A program made the translations under genes and the position numbers. A DNA stretch of 63,832 nt, filler included, from Platydemus manokwari (lineage: Eukaryota): the NCBI GenBank assembly GCA_037951405.1. It is 6 parts of 6 records of this genome, joined end to end, with 100 filler letters (N's around TTAATTAATTAA, not from the genome) between each part and the next. Parts side by side here need not be neighbours in the genome. Positions count along the whole stretch, not along the records: positions 51,472 to 63,832 come from JBBMOY010172232.1; 5 more parts are not named here. One strand, written 5' to 3'. Positions within the stretch are counted from its first letter, which is position 1. Each line of letters begins with the position of its first letter. Below, piece after piece: positions 55,313 through 63,832 of the stretch. The notes under the pieces were generated by a model, which was not told the DNA's origin, ran no database searches, and saw only the letters and a program-made list of their open reading frames with translations.

Positions 55313-58300
55313 AGTGACGTTATATTTGTTTAAATAATTGGTTGGCTGATTAGTGTAGTTTTTTAAATAAATATTATGCCTGCATATCGCTCTCGATAAC
55401 TGACTAGTCACGAGAAAGGGTACTGTGTTACCATGAAGGAACTACTGACTTCCCACGAGTATGTTATTTACTTTAGCCAATACTTGTACGGGAAGAAATT
55501 GGAGACTTAAAAACAACTGCTAATGAAACAAATAAAACTTTAAATGAGGTTATTCAGAATTTTTAATTCTCGATAAATGCAACTCCTGGTAACATAAACT
55601 GTGCAGGTTTTTATATAAATTCAGAAGCGTTTTTAGGAAGAGATGGTAAAGGTATTAATGAAAATTTTCTACAAAGTAAAGTTCCAAAATTTAATTATTA
55701 ATTAATAAGAATTTTTAATTATTAAACATAAAGGGGAAAATCAATTAAATTTAGCTGATAGTTCTCTTATTAAATTAAATAAAAATTTCAATAATTTAAT
55801 ACATGGAAGAATTGATGAAGAAAGACTAAAAAGGGAATGAAGCTTCCCTGTTCAAGATATAGATATATATCCAGATGTTTTAAGGAAAGTAGGAATTTCT
55901 GTTCAACAATTTTTGAAAATTAAATATTTAACGGATCTTAAAGATGTACAAAATAAAAATGAATAAAATGATTCCGTAATTCAAAATAAACTTAAAACAT
56001 CGAGAAAAGGATTAAATAATTATCATTTAAAGTTGTCACCACAGGCAAACCAAATAGAATGTTTTTTATGAATTAAGAATTTTATGAATTAATTAAATTT
56101 TGTTTTATAAAATGGTAGCAAAATTAGATGCAAATTGTTATATAAATTTAAACATGGAATTAACTCATAATTAACTACAGAATCAAATTTACACCAACCC
56201 AAAGATATCATTTTTGAATATCAACAAACTTCAAATCCTATAGATATTTGTAATAAAAAATGCTACTGTTGTAGAATAAGACCATAATATAACTTTAGAA
56301 AATAATTTCTTTCCTAATTTATTTAATTTTGTGAGATTAACATAGGGAACACATAAAATTGAAAATATTGAAAGTGTTGGAGAAATATTTAGAATGTTAA
56401 ATTTAATATTATTAGATCAATCTGATGAAAGAACAGGAGAGTGAATGAATTCCAGATAAAACTAATGAAGATCAAAATAAAGGCAATAGAAGATTTAAAA
56501 GAAGAAATGCCTTTTATAATTTAAAAAAAGAAGTTCACAAGACGATTTCCAATGAAACATATATTTGGATTTTTAGAAAGCTACAACAGACCATTATTTT
56601 TGATGATGATTAAATTAACCTTAAACAGAAATATAAATGATAAGAAAATATTTTACAGAACAAAAGGGGAAGAAAAATTAACTATCAAATCATTGGAAAT
56701 TTGTATTCCTGGATTAACCCTAAATCCAGAGAACGAGCTTGAATTATTGAAAAGAATACTGATGGAATATTATGATATTCTTATGATAATAATAATTCGA
56801 ATCAATAAGATACTCTCAATGATTCAAATCTTATTTTATTGCAGTCAGTCAAAAGCAGATTTATGGATATCCACCTAAAATATAACTATTCTCAGAAATA
56901 AGGTTGTGTTATATATAATGTACATAGATTATAACAAATATGAATAATGAATGATACTTTGATTGATAAGCAATTATACAATATATGATAAACTAAGTTA
57001 AAAGTGGAAGCTTTATACCCTGAAGTAATTAAAATCAGTAGAGGGTCTAGGCACTCCATACTTCGAATAAAAACTTAAGAAATGATTAATCATTTTAGGT
57101 CTACAAACTCTAACGACTTTGTAGATTGCAATTTACTGTTTTCCAACTAATCGCCTGTCGGTGATTGATGAAACAATAACAATGACATGTATGAAAAAAG
57201 GCTTTAAAAGGGTAGAAATTCATCTCGATGCCTATCACAAAGCCCTGGTATTCTTGAAATCGACATGAAAACCGATCAGTTTCCGCTTTCAAACATGGAT
57301 GGCTGCGCTGTCACAATACGATTTCGATTTAAGATACAGAAATGGAGAGAATCATAGCAACGCAGATAGATTGTCTAGAATCAACGAGACACTATGTTCC
57401 CAGTGCAAGACGAGACATAATGAAGCAAAGATGGAAAAGCCGAAAACCAAATATTTAGCCCAAATGCAAATAAAATCAGGGATAATGCAGAAAATACAGG
57501 AAACACAGCATAAAAGATGCAGAAATAGTGGAGACATTCAGATTTCTAAATAGTGTGAACATTAGTTGTGAACATTACCAAAATATACATAATTCATAAT
57601 TATAAGAACTACCTAGTAGTCATTATCGACAGATTCAGCAAGCTGGTGAGCCTCACTGCTACATCTAAGCGAGACGAAAAGACAATCTTCCAGGTCATTT
57701 TGAACTTGTGGGTTTATTGTTTTGGAACGACAGAGAACATTATATCTGATAACAAAAACAATTTGGAAGCAAAGTTATGAGGGAAGCGTGTTTAATGTTG
57801 GGTATCAAACAAGACTTCATCTCACCATGCCTGCATCAATTCAACGGGCTAGTGGAAAGAGCTATGTAAGAGCCATGAGAAAAATTGGGCTGAATTGTTG
57901 CAAGCATATAATTCTGCATCAACGCAACAGATCAATTAACAACGAGGTTCTCGCCTTTCGAGATCATCTACGAGCGGAAGATCAATGTTCATACAGATGT
58001 GAGTCACAAGAACCAAGCTCAAAATGATATTGCAGCAGCAGCTTGAGAAAACCGATACAGGGGGAAAAGAACACATCAAGTTTTTCAGGTGGGAGAGAAG
58101 TTCTAGTTCGAGTAGATCCCCATAAGAGGAAGAAGAATAGATGCCAGTACGAAGACCCCTACCGAATCACCGTTTTAAAGTCAGACAGACAAATGGCCAT
58201 AAAATACAGACAAGTAAGGTGACTGGAACGATGGAGCAGGCTTTAAGAGGAGGCCAGTGGAGTGCTTAAATAAACAAACAAGTTGTATTTGTTTAAATAA

Positions 58301-58365
58301 TTGATTGGTGGATTAGCGTAGTTCTTCAAATAAATATTATGCCTGAAAGTGCTGATGGCGTAACT
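55313..58365 (+). mobile_element. Internally deleted Ty3/gypsy element inserted into pPolB
   Basis: LTRs 55313-55401 and 58256-58365 (AGT...TAACT), ATATA target duplication (55308-55312 and 58366-58370), PPT taagaggagg, RNase H end (LSQYDFDLRYRNGENHSNAD) and integrase pieces (VIIDRFSK). Confidence 0.85.
56110..56770 (+). pseudogene. Polinton double-jelly-roll major capsid protein fragment
   Basis: TESNLHQPKDIIFE...ITLENNFFPNLF...KIENIESVG...PMKHIFGFLESYNR...KLTLNRN...KLTIKSLEICIP resembles the Maverick MCP N-terminal jelly roll. Confidence 0.7.
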
Positions 58366-60620
58366 ATATAATTAATTCTAAATGATTCAATAGCATCTGC
58401 TAGAATATTAACATCCTATTTTAAGTTTATATATGTGTAATCCCATAATGTTTTACAATTGAATTTAGTCTAGATATCTTGAGCTCTTTTATACTCTTCT
58501 TCTGTTATTCAACTTAAATTTAATTTTGACTAAAAACATTCTATTGGTGGTAATATAGTTTCATTTAATATTTCAAATGAAGTTCTAAAATCATATGGAT
58601 AGATTCCTTTTTCTTTCATAACAGTATAATTTGAAGAAAACTCTTTTTCAATTCTATAAAATCTTCATCTGTCATTGATTTACTTATTTTATCTAAAGAG
58701 TTATGAAATATTCTAAGTGAATATGTAATCTAATACACTTATAATTAAACGAAATATAAATTTCTTCTGTTAATGATTATATTTTTTAATTTTTCTCAGA
58801 CTTTATTGCAAGTTCATTTATCACTAGATGAAAATCATATTTAGATCCATTATGAAAATATAATGAAAAATCTTTTGGCTGTCTTGCTAATGAATTACAT
58901 TCTACACATGCGGCTCCTCTATAATTGTTTTCTTTAAATAATGATCAAGATCCTTAACTTTAAATACTTGGCCAATTGTTACTCTTGAATCATGCAATGC
59001 GGAAAAAAGTTGGATCATTAATATTTATTTCTTTAAATTCCTTTTTACAATAAATACAATTAGTAGAATTATTATAATTTATTATGTCTTGTTCTTTCAT
59101 ATTAATCTCAAATTTTGTTTTTACTTTTGATCCAAATCTTTTTTCATTTTCCACAATCCATTCAATACATTCTTTAATACAATTCTCTCCTTGAAATAAT
59201 TTGCCTTTTTTCTATTAGATCAGGATATCTTAAAATTAATTTTAAATGTACATAAGAAGGAATTTGATTACTTAAGACTTTTGTTGCTTTACCTCTTTGT
59301 TCTTTTTATTGAAATATTTACACATTCTATATTAGCAACACTTATAAAAGAAACTTAAATTTGATGTTTATAATTTTTAAATTTTAAAATATTTCCAGTA
59401 TCTTTCTTACTTAACATAATTATTTTTGTTATTTCTTATACTTATACTTATAATATCTTTCATATATACCTTGTAAGCAACAGACAATAACACTAATAAT
59501 AGAAATACATATACTGGTATCCCTTTTACTAATGTACAAGCAGTAATTTTCTGTTACTGTGTGTTAGACATATTGGCTATGTGACATCCATATAGAAGTA
59601 GAAATATTATCTTTCTTAATTGACATTAGTACTTTTGCTATTTTTACCATCTTTACCACATATTTGTTGATGTTCATACAAAGTATAAACAATATTTTTC
59701 ACAAATATTTAATCTTTCATTTATCTTTATTTATAATTTAATTCACCACTAATAAATCGATTGAAATTTTTATTGATTTCATAATGAGATACTCTGTTAT
59801 TTTCTAAATATGAAAGTTTAATATCTCGAATATACCCTTCTTTCTTTGAAATATAGATTGGAAATAACTTTTAGTCTTTGATTTCTCTTACCTTTAATTT
59901 TATAAACATTTATTTTAAAATTTTTGTTCGTCTTAAATTTTTAAATCTGTTTAATTTCCGTCTATATTTAATGTCTTTAAATTTTTTATATGATGACCTA
60001 GTCTATTTGGATCTCTATGGATTGATATAAGTGAGCTAATATTGAATATGTGAAAAATTTTCTGTCATAGTTTTCTACATTTACTATGTCAATCCTTCTA
60101 AAAGGTAAAGGTATATAATTACTTCCCGATAACACATTTATCTTTGAAATGCTTATTTTTATGTTTCTCAATTCAATATATTCCAACCAATACATTTTAC
60201 TTTAATAAATCATCATCTAATTTCTGAGGAAAACTTTGATTGATTCTAACAATTTATCTTCATTAAATTGACCTTCTCCTATTTGTATTGTTTGATCTGA
60301 ACTTAATGCTATTGGAATATAATCATATTCATTTGTATTGTGATTTATATTTTGCAGAATAATCGTAAAATTTATTTGAGATTTAATATTTGAGTTTTTA
60401 TTTAAGAATTTTAAAATTTCAAGAGATTCTTCTTTAATATGGAAAATTATATTTTCAGTTGATTGAGATATTTTATTAATCTTATGGATTTTGTAAATAT
60501 CTTTCAGAATGTCATTTCTATTATCAAGTAAAGTTATTTCATTGTTAGTAGAACTTTGTTCATTAAGTTTTGCTATATGTTTATTGGATATTTCGTGGGA
60601 TCATAGAGCCTGGATGGTTT
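58366..60620 (-). pseudogene. Polinton pPolB copy 2, N-terminal part
   Basis: SGSNYIPLP...VNVENYDRKFF-x-YSILAHLY, NYRGAACVEC, FHNGSKYDFHL, KGIYPYDF, LPPIECF and DVNILADAIESFR. An apparent unrelated insert lies at about 59400-59680. Confidence 0.9.
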
Positions 60621-61233
60621 TAAACGAGATTTCACAAATTTGGTTATTTCGTTCATTTACAAGATTTATTTTTATAAGGTTTTGATTTTATGGTTTTTTA
60701 GTTTTTCTAATTTTCTAGTTTTTAAAAAAATGTGTTTTATTCAATATGATACCATAAGTAGTAAGTAGGACCAAACCTTGAGCCTGATCCTCAAATACGA
60801 GCTCTGATTCTACTTACTACTTACAAAATTCTACAGAATTGCTGCATCGATGAATTACTTGTTAGAATTATCAATATGTACGATTGTCAATTCTCACAAA
60901 AATTACAATAATCAAAGAGTTCGATATTTTACAATATGATCAATATTAATTATGAAACCTCCAAAATTTGAAATAAAAATTAAACAATTGTGCGCTTCTT
61001 GGAAATAGCTGCAACTTTCTCTTCTTAATATACGTAGAGGAAATTAAACTTCAATCAAGATATTTTTCATTATAAAAATAATTTTATAATAATTTATTCA
61101 ACTTTTATAACTTTAAAAATAAATTAAAGATATAAATAAATAAATAAAATAATGGTGTATTGAAATTATTCAGATTTTAAAGATACTAAAAGCACAAATT
61201 TGATAAATATACTTAAATAAATGAATGATTTAC

Positions 61234-62850
61234 CTTTATTTCATTATCATTAACATTTATCTCGGCATATATTTCATAACAAGCATCAATATAATTGAAT
61301 AGTTTCACTGGTAAGCTCAATTGTTCATCCAATTTCATTGAATATGGAACATAGATATCCGTAAAAAATGGTAAAATGACTTTTAATGTTTGTGATGGAG
61401 CAATCCAAATGCCTTTTTCTGTCATACAATAAGCATCAGCTTTCCATGTTGTCATGGAATCTGGAACAGTGAGATTGATGAATTTAGTTGTTTTAGTAAA
61501 ATATGAAAATAGCCATGATTCAGGAAAATATTCTCTGATTTGTTTTTTCAGTTCAGATTTTACTTTAGGTTCTTTAAAGATTTTCCTTTCCATAAGTAAA
61601 CCCTTAATCATATCATCGTCATTTTCTAAACTATAATCTAAAGTATAAGGTCTTCTATAGTATTGGCACACAGAATTTATAACTCTCGCATTTGTTATTG
61701 ATGCAAATCCGGAGTTAGCGAAAGCTTTACTACTGTCAAATCCATTTCCAAATCGATGCCGAAAAATTCGCGTCTTATTTTGCACAGGAATACATAAAGA
61801 TTCATTACTCATGATATGTCTTGAATCGACGGTAATTTTATGATTTAATTCAATAAGTTTTCTTATCAAATATTGTAAATCAACGTTACTGGATTTTCCA
61901 AATTGAGATAGAGCTATATCACTGATTCGAACGGCACATGAAGTATTTTTCATTCCAGAATCCATTTCTAATACAACTTTGGATTTCGGAACTGATGTTT
62001 TCTTATTAAATGAAAACTTTCCACCACCAACATGAGAACAATTCGATAGACCATCAGATATTTCAATTGAATCAGCTACAACTTCTTGATTAGAATTAAT
62101 AAAATACACAACAATATGTACATCAGGTCCCATATGTTTCGATAAAGGGATTTCAATTATTCGTTCAAATATGCTTAGCTTTTCGTATTTTTTTACAATA
62201 TTTGGTTTTTTATTTGAAACAGTGCCAATTGGCTCATTTCTGGAATAATACAACTTTAGACCCCTTTTGGAACAATCCCAATTTGTCCATCCAAAATAAC
62301 ATTGGCAATCGTTTCCATATTTACAGTATCCATGTTTACAATAATAAGGTTTGATGCATTTGTCACAACTATTCCCTTTCCATCCTATTTTGCAAATACA
62401 TCTATTTGGTTCAACACAAGCTCCATTTACACAATCATCATCACAAATTGGTTCTCGACAATTATTACCTTTCCATCCAGATTTACAAACAATTGAATGA
62501 TCATCTCTACAAATATAATGACCTAAGAAGTCATCTCGAGACTCACATTTAGTCGGAACTGAAGGAACTCTAAGCATAGTAATGATTTGACCACGAGAAA
62601 ATATTTGTGTATATAAATCGATTGTTGATATATCATAGTTGGTTAAAATGGATAAATTAATTTGACCTGGACATCGAATGGATTCAGTAATTGGTTGAAT
62701 CTGAAGATAATGCTTATCTACTGAATTCCAATTTGATAAAGTTTGATAATTGGTTGGATCAGCCATGTGATTATTGAGATTACCTAAAAAATAATAATTA
62801 AATTCTAAAGCATTAGAGTTTACTATTAAATTTGAAGATAATCTTATCAA
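61234..62850 (-). CDS. Alpha-2-macroglobulin/TEP/CD109-family exon with an inserted DSL-EGF-EGF module
   Basis: A2M motifs SRGQI, VVYFI...EVVADSI, IREYFPESWLF, VPDSMTTWKADAYC and PFF...PYS. The Cys-rich insert CESRDDFLGHYIC...GWKGNNC...GWTNWDC is in frame. Donor AAG|GTAAAT at 61233; 5' boundary uncertain. Confidence 0.9.
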
Positions 62851-62903
62851 TGTATATTATCAAATTTCAGTCAAATTAAGATCATTTATTTCAGTAATAC
62901 ATA

Positions 62904-63832
62904 AGTTACATCACTGACACTTGTAGACATAATGTTTATTTAAAAACTGAACTAATCCGCCAATCAACTATTTAAACAAATACAACGTGTTTGTTTATTT
63001 AAGCACTTTACTCGTCTCCTCTTAAGTATTGCTCTATCGTTCCAGCCACCCTACTTGTCTGTATTTTATGACATGAGAGAATTGAATCTCCATTTGTCTG
63101 TCTGACTTGAATACGGTAATTCGATACGGACCTTTGTACTAGTATCCATTCTTCTTCCTCTCTTTTTGCTAGCCGGTTCGATTGATGCTGGTATGGTGAG
63201 CTGAATTCATGTTTGATACCTAATTTTGAACACGCCTATCACATTAATTTGCCTCCAAATTGTTTCCCGTTTTCTGATAAAATGCTCTTTGGTTTTCCAA
63301 AACGATAAATCCACGAGTTTAAGATGTCCTAGAAGATTGTCTTTTTCGTCCTGCTTAGATGTAGCAGTGAGGCTGACCAGCTTGCTGAATCTGTCGATAA
63401 TGACTACTAGGTACTAATTGTAACTATGCATCATGTATATTTGTGCAATATTCACTACGATTTGCTCATGAAACTCAGAGGCTAACCGAGGGAACAGAAA
63501 CTCCTTAGTTCTGAATTGATCAATCTTTCTCTTTGCACATATAATACATTCTTTCAGGATCTTTTTGATGGTGTTGAACATGTAGGGCCAATAAAAACTG
63601 TCGTCCAAATATGAAAAGGTTTTCTTCGAGTCTAAGTGGCAGAGTTCCTTGTGAATTTTCTTGACAAAATGAGCGGCAAACTTTTTTGGTATTATAGCAG
63701 CGAACCCCTCATCTTTCTCTAGCATCAGCGTATTGTTGACCACCATTAGTTTATCTTTATTAGGCTGAGTCAAAAGTTATTCATGTTTTTTAGTTGTTTA
63801 AAGTTTTTGTTTTACCAAATCATTTAAACATA
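62904..63832 (-). mobile_element. 3' end of a Ty3/gypsy element (same family as 55313-58365)
   Basis: H2C2 integrase (HKELCH...YWP...CIIC), rve remnants, PPT, and a 109-bp LTR at 62904-63012 that aligns with 58256-58365. Confidence 0.9.

Follow-up and report, generated by a model that had tools for sequence, protein, structure and literature searches.

We describe here a large internal exon of a flatworm gene of the alpha-2-macroglobulin (A2M)/thioester-protein (TEP) family, located on the minus strand of a 63,832-nt stretch of Platydemus manokwari DNA (assembly GCA_037951405.1; six genome parts joined by filler, hereafter the window), in which the fifth macroglobulin domain (MG5) holds a DSL-EGF1-EGF2 module. 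By sequence comparison and predicted structure, this module is shown to derive from a ligand of the Delta/Serrate type. We consider it likely that the exon belongs to a flatworm-wide, secreted A2M-type subfamily, whose ligand-derived MG5 arm binds proteins. A preliminary description of the window had noted the in-frame insertion and read it as a Notch-binding surface displayed by a secreted thioester-family protein; the observation is confirmed, while the interpretation is partly supported.

The exon lies in an open reading frame (ORF) of 545 amino acids (aa) at 62850..61213. According to our own estimate from base composition, ~8% of random codons would be stops at ~31% GC, so a frame of 545 open codons is not expected by chance. 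Searched by tblastn with 11 homologs, the 12.4-kb piece of the window at 51472-63832 (JBBMOY010172232.1) matched only in the exon interval, and similarity to the relatives was confined to ~62784 to ~61231. These limits coincide with splice signals—a polypyrimidine tract with AG at 62785-62784 as the acceptor, and AAG|GTAAAT with GT at 61233-61232 as the donor—and we therefore read 62783..61234 as one internal coding exon of 1,550 nt, with 516 full codons (62781..61234). Its counterpart in homologs comprises residues ~526-1081 in proteins of ~2,000 aa. GC content is 31% in the exon (20% at third codon positions, GC3) and 23% in the DNA downstream of it. From one end to the other, the exon divides as follows.

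61234..62783, minus strand: single internal coding exon of the A2M/TEP family (ORF, splice signals, tblastn, DNA contigs over both borders)
62566..62730, minus strand: N-terminal half of MG5, with final strand '..FSRGQIITMLRV' (alignment; AlphaFold2 (AF2) predicted local distance difference test score (pLDDT) 84-91; VIA to MG5-MG6 of C3/C5/CD109, Z 11-14.5)
62458..62547, minus strand: N-terminally truncated DSL domain (CESRDDFLGHYIC...CKSGWKGNNC), its 4 Cys corresponding to Cys3-Cys6 of the ligands (Pfam, phmmer against PDB, insert-only model)
62365..62445, minus strand: EGF1 of the short-loop Delta/Jagged type, 6 Cys (aligned to EGF1 of DLL4, JAG1 and DLL1)
62272..62358, minus strand: EGF2, 6 Cys, with 'G-N/D-D-C' as opposed to 'P-W/F-x-C' in ligands (alignment, fold match)
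62176..62271, minus strand: poorly conserved linker back to MG5, predicted to be disordered (pLDDT 42-43 at exon aa 179-199; identity 16%)
61918..62175, minus strand: C-terminal half of MG5 (SIFERII...MGPDVHIVVYFI...EVVADS...AVRISD; Pfam A2M_BRD, phmmer to human A2M)
61537..61917, minus strand: MG6 segment with a variable, bait-like region and RIFR inside it (pLDDT <50 at exon aa 313-347 and 361-420; identity 18%)
61234..61536, minus strand: end of MG6 and most of MG7 (REYFPESW...LTVPDSMTTW...; Pfam A2M PF00207; 57% identity to the homolog P0001)

No intron separates the insert from the flanking MG5 coding sequence. An uninterrupted frame with an in-frame insert is what the preliminary description had reported, and the 545-aa ORF, the DSL and A2M profile matches, and the PDB, fold and tree evidence laid out below all bear this out.

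Ligand ancestry of the insert

The insert proper spans 62272-62547, in agreement with the Cys-rich stretch first placed at about 62270-62550, and encodes 92 residues with 16 Cys in a 4+6+6 arrangement. At the same point, insert-less A2Ms have ~5 residues in our alignment of the exon with its homologs (alignment A1). Pfam DSL matches at ORF aa 101-134 with 33.6 bits against a curated cut-off of 24.2, so that the initial DSL call holds at the level of the profile, and the score is above cut-off in most of the homologs scanned as well. The signature RDDxLGHYxC and the GWxG motif are present in the insert. All 16 Cys and the invariant Gly/Trp of the module are kept, and in EGF1 the Cys, Gly and Trp columns are invariant across alignment A2, on which the insert-only model was built. 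For the EGF part, Pfam EGF_DL_JAG and JAG1-like_EGF2 reach 18.7 and 16.7 bits at ORF aa 141-164 versus a cut-off of 27, which is exceeded in the homolog P0010.

Comparison with solved structures leads to the same ligands. A phmmer search against all PDB sequences returned DLL4, Jagged-1, DLL1, Jagged-2, Serrate and Delta on top (E 9e-17 to 2e-13), with alignments extending through DSL, EGF1 and EGF2. Predicted on its own, as the preliminary description had proposed, the insert adopts a DSL-ligand fold in a model with a mean pLDDT of 91.9: the first 26 Foldseek matches are all DLL4, JAG1, DLL1, JAG2, Serrate or Delta (E 5e-11 to 1e-6). The HHIP EGFs come next, at E 4e-4, after a more than 100-fold gap in E-value. 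Superposition onto Serrate (7alt) and DLL4 (4xlw) gave a root-mean-square deviation (rmsd) of 1.7-2.1 Å over ~98 columns, at 37-45% identity.

Could the stretch instead consist of generic EGF repeats, with the DSL call being a false positive that arises from Cys spacing? The models EGF_TEN, EGF_PEAR1L and EGF_2 match it too, and the PDB match list contains fibrillin, WIF-1 and teneurin further down. This is, however, hardly credible given the DSL score in the exon and most homologs scanned, the RDDxLGHYxC signature, and the gap that sets the 26 best fold matches apart from any other family. When 18 inserts of the A2M type were placed in a maximum-likelihood tree together with 11 canonical ligand modules and six generic EGF triplets, the A2M inserts formed one group (support 87/87), and inserts plus ligands stood apart from the generic EGF triplets (support 95/88), as the preliminary description would have it; with 96 columns and a small outgroup, the tree indicates affinity rather than a donor. 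On the strength of the tree and the fold matches, we rejected the generic-EGF explanation.

The macroglobulin core and its flatworm relatives

On both sides of the module, the exon encodes macroglobulin sequence. Pfam A2M_BRD matches at ORF aa 229-311 and A2M (PF00207) at ORF aa 445-527 (61.7 bits), both passing the Pfam cut-off. Only positions 55-134 of the A2M_BRD profile are covered, a half-match showing that the Cys-rich stretch lies inside a macroglobulin domain and divides it. Modelled by AF2 on alignment A1 (the exon and its homologs, including the insert-less A2Ms), the exon product is predicted with confidence at exon aa 20-170 and 200-290 (pLDDT 74-94) and shows disorder at aa 179-199 and most of aa 295-420. 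Foldseek and VIA place this model on MG5-MG6-MG7 of CD109, TEP1, C5, C3, A2ML1 and A2M (E 1e-13 to 1e-9, Z 11-14.5); in C3, for example, the fold alignment comprises residues 422-623, with 108 residues at an rmsd of 2.2 Å. By sequence, A2ML1 and A2M are the solved proteins nearest to the stretch that follows the insert, with phmmer alignments to residues 500-803 / 526-829 of human A2M, and the C-terminal part of the nearest relative is closest to A2ML1, A2M and CD109. Sequence and models thus point to a host protein from the protease-inhibitor branch of the thioester-protein superfamily, with the insertion in MG5. That canonical A2M and CD109 have no such insert, as originally stated, is confirmed by the alignment and the fold comparison, which extend the statement to C3.

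The position of the bait is taken by a variable stretch of low pLDDT (exon aa ~313-420), between 'GFASITNARV' and 'REYFPESW'. The RIFR motif at 61759-61770, previously thought to form a furin-like site ahead of the bait-like region, is not conserved: the closest relative, P0004, has ISQYSF here, and the segment is absent from trematodes and cestodes. We rejected it as a furin site. A downstream GCGEQ thioester motif, likewise anticipated, did not turn up; neither tblastn of the 11 homologs nor a six-frame scan for GC[GSA]E[QN] found a GCGEQ/TED exon in 51472-63832. P0001, which is 57% identical over 61234..61536, continues into GCGEQ, TED and a receptor-binding domain (RBD). Because P0001 and most of the full-length homologs possess the motif, its absence here represents missing sequence and not a demonstrated loss. 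The view of a secreted thioester-family protein accordingly stands as far as the homologs are concerned, which are predicted to be secreted and mostly contain GCGEQ, while the piece itself lacks the thioester exon.

How widespread is this architecture? When 1.84 billion representative proteins were searched exhaustively with the exon by HMMER, many matches of 1,700-2,150 aa were aligned in one stretch across both the MG5 half and the DSL/EGF module. The insert, as placed by alignment A1, occupies the same point of MG5, after an 'xRGxxx' strand, in ~20 species of trematodes (Paragonimus, Calicophoron with several paralogs, Dicrocoelium, Schistosoma species, Trichobilharzia, Opisthorchis, Fasciola, Fasciolopsis), cestodes (Rodentolepis, Hymenolepis, Taenia, Echinococcus, Mesocestoides, Schistocephalus, Dibothriocephalus) and a monogenean (Protopolystoma). 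Over its full length, the exon is 53-59% identical to its closest relatives. Most full-length homologs checked begin with a hydrophobic, signal-peptide-like N-terminus and contain GCGEQ; a C-terminal receptor-binding (MG8) domain is present in homologs, and the full-length ones bear a C-terminal extension. The full-length homologs checked have no internal transmembrane segment, the sole transmembrane-like stretch beyond the N-terminus being at the C-terminus of a truncated Taenia solium model (P0019).

Conservation is unevenly distributed along the protein. Among 13 flatworm sequences, mean pairwise identity is 52% in the DSL-EGF1-EGF2 module, 41% in MG7, 27% in the MG5 halves, 18% in the bait-like region and 16% in the linker after the module. 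Even without its 16 Cys, the module would, by simple arithmetic, still be ~42% identical, which is strong evidence of selection on the arm itself. The arm is most likely a protein-binding module under strong purifying selection.

As to gene structure, the Opisthorchis viverrini gene encodes 1,957 aa in one uninterrupted 5,874-nt ORF (L003 501-6374), and the Rodentolepis nana gene has at most one interruption, with residues 1-1152 in one block (L002 501-6949). With the orthologs uninterrupted here, the insert is free of flanking introns in three lineages and shows no sign of exon shuffling.

Several paralogs are reduced. GCGEQ is missing from P0111, P0031, P0116 and P0036, and EGF2 from P0016, P0025, P0043, P0116 and P0147, both kinds of loss affecting some of the copies in species that have several paralogs (Dicrocoelium, Fasciola, taeniids); all of these retain the truncated DSL. 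We also came across an intronless A2M-type protein of 1,330 aa (P0015; GC 58%) with the same DSL/EGF insert in MG5 and no TED, encoded at L001 1349-5341 on a contig of ERR14224704, a coral-reef microbiome sample (PMC13083261). Should P0015 stem from an organism other than a neodermatan flatworm, this would make the insert older, or its distribution wider, than the named carriers show.

The preliminary description had left open whether the architecture was already annotated in flatworms. In databases it is, for many flatworm proteomes, albeit with automatically assigned names: 'Delta-like protein' (R. nana), 'DSL domain-containing protein' (H. diminuta, E. canadensis), 'EGF-like domain-containing protein', 'alpha-2-macroglobulin', 'CPAMD8' (one Schistosoma homolog) and 'Murinoglobulin-2'. 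Full-text literature searches on flatworm macroglobulin, thioester, DSL and Notch, made among 8.4 million papers, returned no paper describing the DSL insert or the fusion. The helminth genomes consortium reported A2M-family proteins in all platyhelminths, with an expansion in tapeworms; a macroglobulin of S. mansoni, Smp_089670 (222 kDa), is found in egg secretions (PMC3201919) and has been tried as an antigen in a vaccine screen; and the flatworm proteins also figure in a glycoproteome study and a predicted host-parasite interactome, all of these papers taking them simply for alpha-2-macroglobulins. Going by its size, Smp_089670 may be the DSL-bearing ortholog. What emerges is an A2M subfamily that is visible in databases yet uncharacterised, to which the exon adds one partial member.

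Gene status among high-copy retroelements

Does the exon belong to a live gene, or is it a dead fragment, a relic stranded among transposons? Several observations weigh against the interpretation given so far. Only a single exon is contained in the piece, with no signal peptide, thioester or receptor-binding domain visible, and no other A2M exon was found within 9.7 kb downstream or 1 kb upstream. The exon is placed between high-copy retroelement fragments. Its borders are without parallel in the trematode and cestode orthologs that were compared, where this part of the gene contains no intron, and with at most one interruption in those genes, a lone exon is odd. Searches of sequencing runs for the exon gave one DNA run and no RNA run. 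Across the family, finally, several paralogs do without EGF2 or the thioester, so neither of the two is indispensable.

The retroelement in question is of the long terminal repeat (LTR) type. Copies of its integrase-to-3'-end portion flank the exon in inverted orientation at 57565-58345 (plus strand) and 62939-63773 (minus strand), one of them ending 156 nt upstream of the exon; they are 74-87% identical, match Integrase_H2C2 and rve, and have broken frames. A third, terminal fragment of 64 nt lies at 55319-55382. In the DNA run, summed depth was 10^4-10^5, and up to 285,000, for the retroelement and 20-100 for the exon. The flanking retroelement is a member of a very abundant element family.

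The relic explanation draws on this inverted, very high-copy element, on the lack of neighbouring A2M exons and on the missing RNA, but has to contend with a 516-codon frame that is intact in DNA of ~20% GC3, with a module that has kept its full set of Cys and invariant Gly/Trp, with 53-59% identity to the closest relatives over the whole exon, and with homology ending exactly at a consensus acceptor and donor. Exon depth, moreover, is that of low-copy and not of repeat-like sequence. We thus regard the relic as unlikely and a live gene with long, transposon-filled introns as very probable, because the frame is intact, the invariant Cys, Gly and Trp are complete, and the splice signals fall exactly at the limits of homology. 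Genomic contigs of the DNA run span both exon borders, and there is no spliced form among them.

A few further features of the locus deserve mention. A contig from the DNA run links 62807 with 63652 via 30 other letters at a depth of ~11, and may represent an allele or a second copy that lacks most of the upstream retroelement fragment. Another, covering 61224-61545, differs at 61268, 61480 and 61496 and has a depth of ~40 as compared to 10-17 for neighbouring exon contigs, which hints at a near-identical second copy of the exon or at an allele. Farther away, an 81-aa ORF at 54069-54314 (minus strand) contains '...ILYIDTDSCII...' and has no Pfam match at E<=0.01. It resembles the YxDTDS motif of family-B DNA polymerases, which would suggest a relic of an element of the Polinton/Maverick or a similar type.

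The arm and its likeness to known systems

What might such a protein do? The core would most likely act like A2M, A2ML1 and CD109: following secretion, a protease would cut the variable, bait-like stretch, and the ensuing conformational change would allow the thioester—encoded by exons outside the piece—to covalently link the protease. Secretion, bait cleavage, trapping and thioester linkage are here extrapolated from the homologs and from knowledge of the family. The MG5 loop, in turn, carries a rigid module with eight predicted disulfides followed by a disordered tether of ~30 aa. The arm most likely projects from MG5 as a binding module on a flexible return tether.

DSL domains are not known to have any class of partners other than Notch-type EGF repeats, and the arm might be a working ligand or a decoy for Notch receptors of the worm or the host, which could either tie the sensing of proteases to Notch signalling or inhibit such signalling. 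Several features speak for this: the module is of the DSL-ligand type by sequence, fold and tree, it is strongly conserved, and anchorless, secreted DSL proteins are known from C. elegans, for instance DSL-1 (PMC3415683). Of the face with which human Jagged-1 binds Notch (F199, R201, R203, D205 and F207; PMC3415683), the exon has K, E, R, D and L at the equivalent positions, and hence keeps two of five residues, R203 and D205; G208, H209 and Y210, also on that DSL face, are retained as well. Among 25 A2M-type sequences, R203 is R in 13 and D205 is D in 12, whereas F199 and R201 are variable; F207 is replaced by the conservative Leu in 17, including here, and is Phe in seven, mainly from cestodes.

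Set against these residues are substantial losses. With four of six Cys, the DSL domain here matches Pfam positions 13-46 of 46, and the match starts at position 11 or 13 and runs to 46 in all A2M-type homologs scanned, as opposed to position 1 in canonical ligands (e.g. P0018, P0027, P0042, P0134, P0052, P0113 and P0106). Since DSL disulfides link consecutive Cys (PMC3415683) and the first Cys pair is missing, exactly one disulfide loop has been removed, and this in every member of the family. Where ligand EGF2 has Pro-Trp (P279/W280 in human Jagged-1; PMC3415683), the whole A2M family has 'G-N/D-D'. Nor did Pfam find a C2/MNNL domain, the MG5 strand directly preceding DSL. In the 4XL1 and 5UK5 complexes, it is C2/MNNL that supplies the other half of the contact with Notch. 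The module thus lacks roughly half of the known Notch interface. The earlier assignment to the receptor-binding DSL-DOS region is therefore right about DSL/EGF1/EGF2 ancestry and goes too far where completeness is concerned, given the truncated DSL, the absent C2/MNNL and the altered EGF2.

A further argument is mechanical: Notch activation requires a pulling force that ligands in soluble form are generally unable to exert, which would leave a soluble protein with the role of a decoy or inhibitor at most. For this reason, a soluble decoy or an adhesion module is more plausible than an activator. All in all, we consider a working Notch ligand or decoy doubtful, and prefer to speak of a ligand-derived, protein-binding arm. 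Very unlikely, to our minds, is a more elaborate scenario, in which the arm would engage Notch-family or other EGF-repeat receptors of host or worm and protease capture would switch the presentation of ligand or decoy. If true, however, such a switchable arm would tie extracellular proteolysis directly to Notch signalling, in a way not described before, and would be a possible factor in host manipulation.

Either outcome would be of interest. Parasitic flatworms secrete protease inhibitors of the A2M family in abundance, and should the arm prove to bind Notch or some other EGF-repeat receptor, these "protease inhibitors" would have to be reinterpreted. If it does not, the family still represents a clean case of a signalling module being reused as a loop insertion in an MG domain.

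Compared to canonical A2M-type proteins (A2M, A2ML1, CD109), the flatworm proteins share the order of MG5, MG6 with a bait-like region and MG7, and have their best sequence and fold matches among them. The relatives continue with GCGEQ, TED and the receptor-binding domain, and full-length homologs have the same signal-peptide-like N-terminus and no internal transmembrane segment. They differ in that the flatworm MG5 holds a Delta/Serrate-type module of ~92 aa plus a ~30-aa tether, to which nothing in the solved or insert-less A2Ms of the alignment is comparable at this position, and in length, with 1,700-2,150 aa including the C-terminal extension versus ~1,450-1,500 aa. Accessory domains on an MG scaffold are not without precedent: C3, C4 and C5 bear ANA in MG6 and C345C at the C-terminus, and CPAMD8 a C-terminal Kazal domain. 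The scaffold is thus tolerant of additions in these proteins as in the flatworm ones, but domain and site are different, being DSL-EGF in MG5 in the flatworm case; Pfam detected no Kazal, ANA or C345C domain in the homologs scanned.

With the DSL ligands (DLL1/DLL4/Delta and Serrate/Jagged), in turn, the module has in common the order DSL(C3-C6)-EGF1-EGF2, the fold, and the RDDxxGHY and GWxG motifs. Unlike them, it has no C2/MNNL, no first DSL loop and no further EGF repeats, has not kept F199/R201, and has 'G-N/D-D' in place of the EGF2 'PW'. Neither a type I anchor nor a cytoplasmic tail is present in the flatworm homologs checked, and the module, rather than heading a membrane ligand, forms a loop insertion with both ends anchored in MG5. 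A further parallel is offered by DSL-1 and OSM-11 of C. elegans (PMC3415683), which are likewise soluble and likewise comprise part of the Notch-binding apparatus of a ligand; yet while these are small, stand-alone proteins, the flatworm module, to go by sequence, would ride on a protease trap of ~220 kDa.

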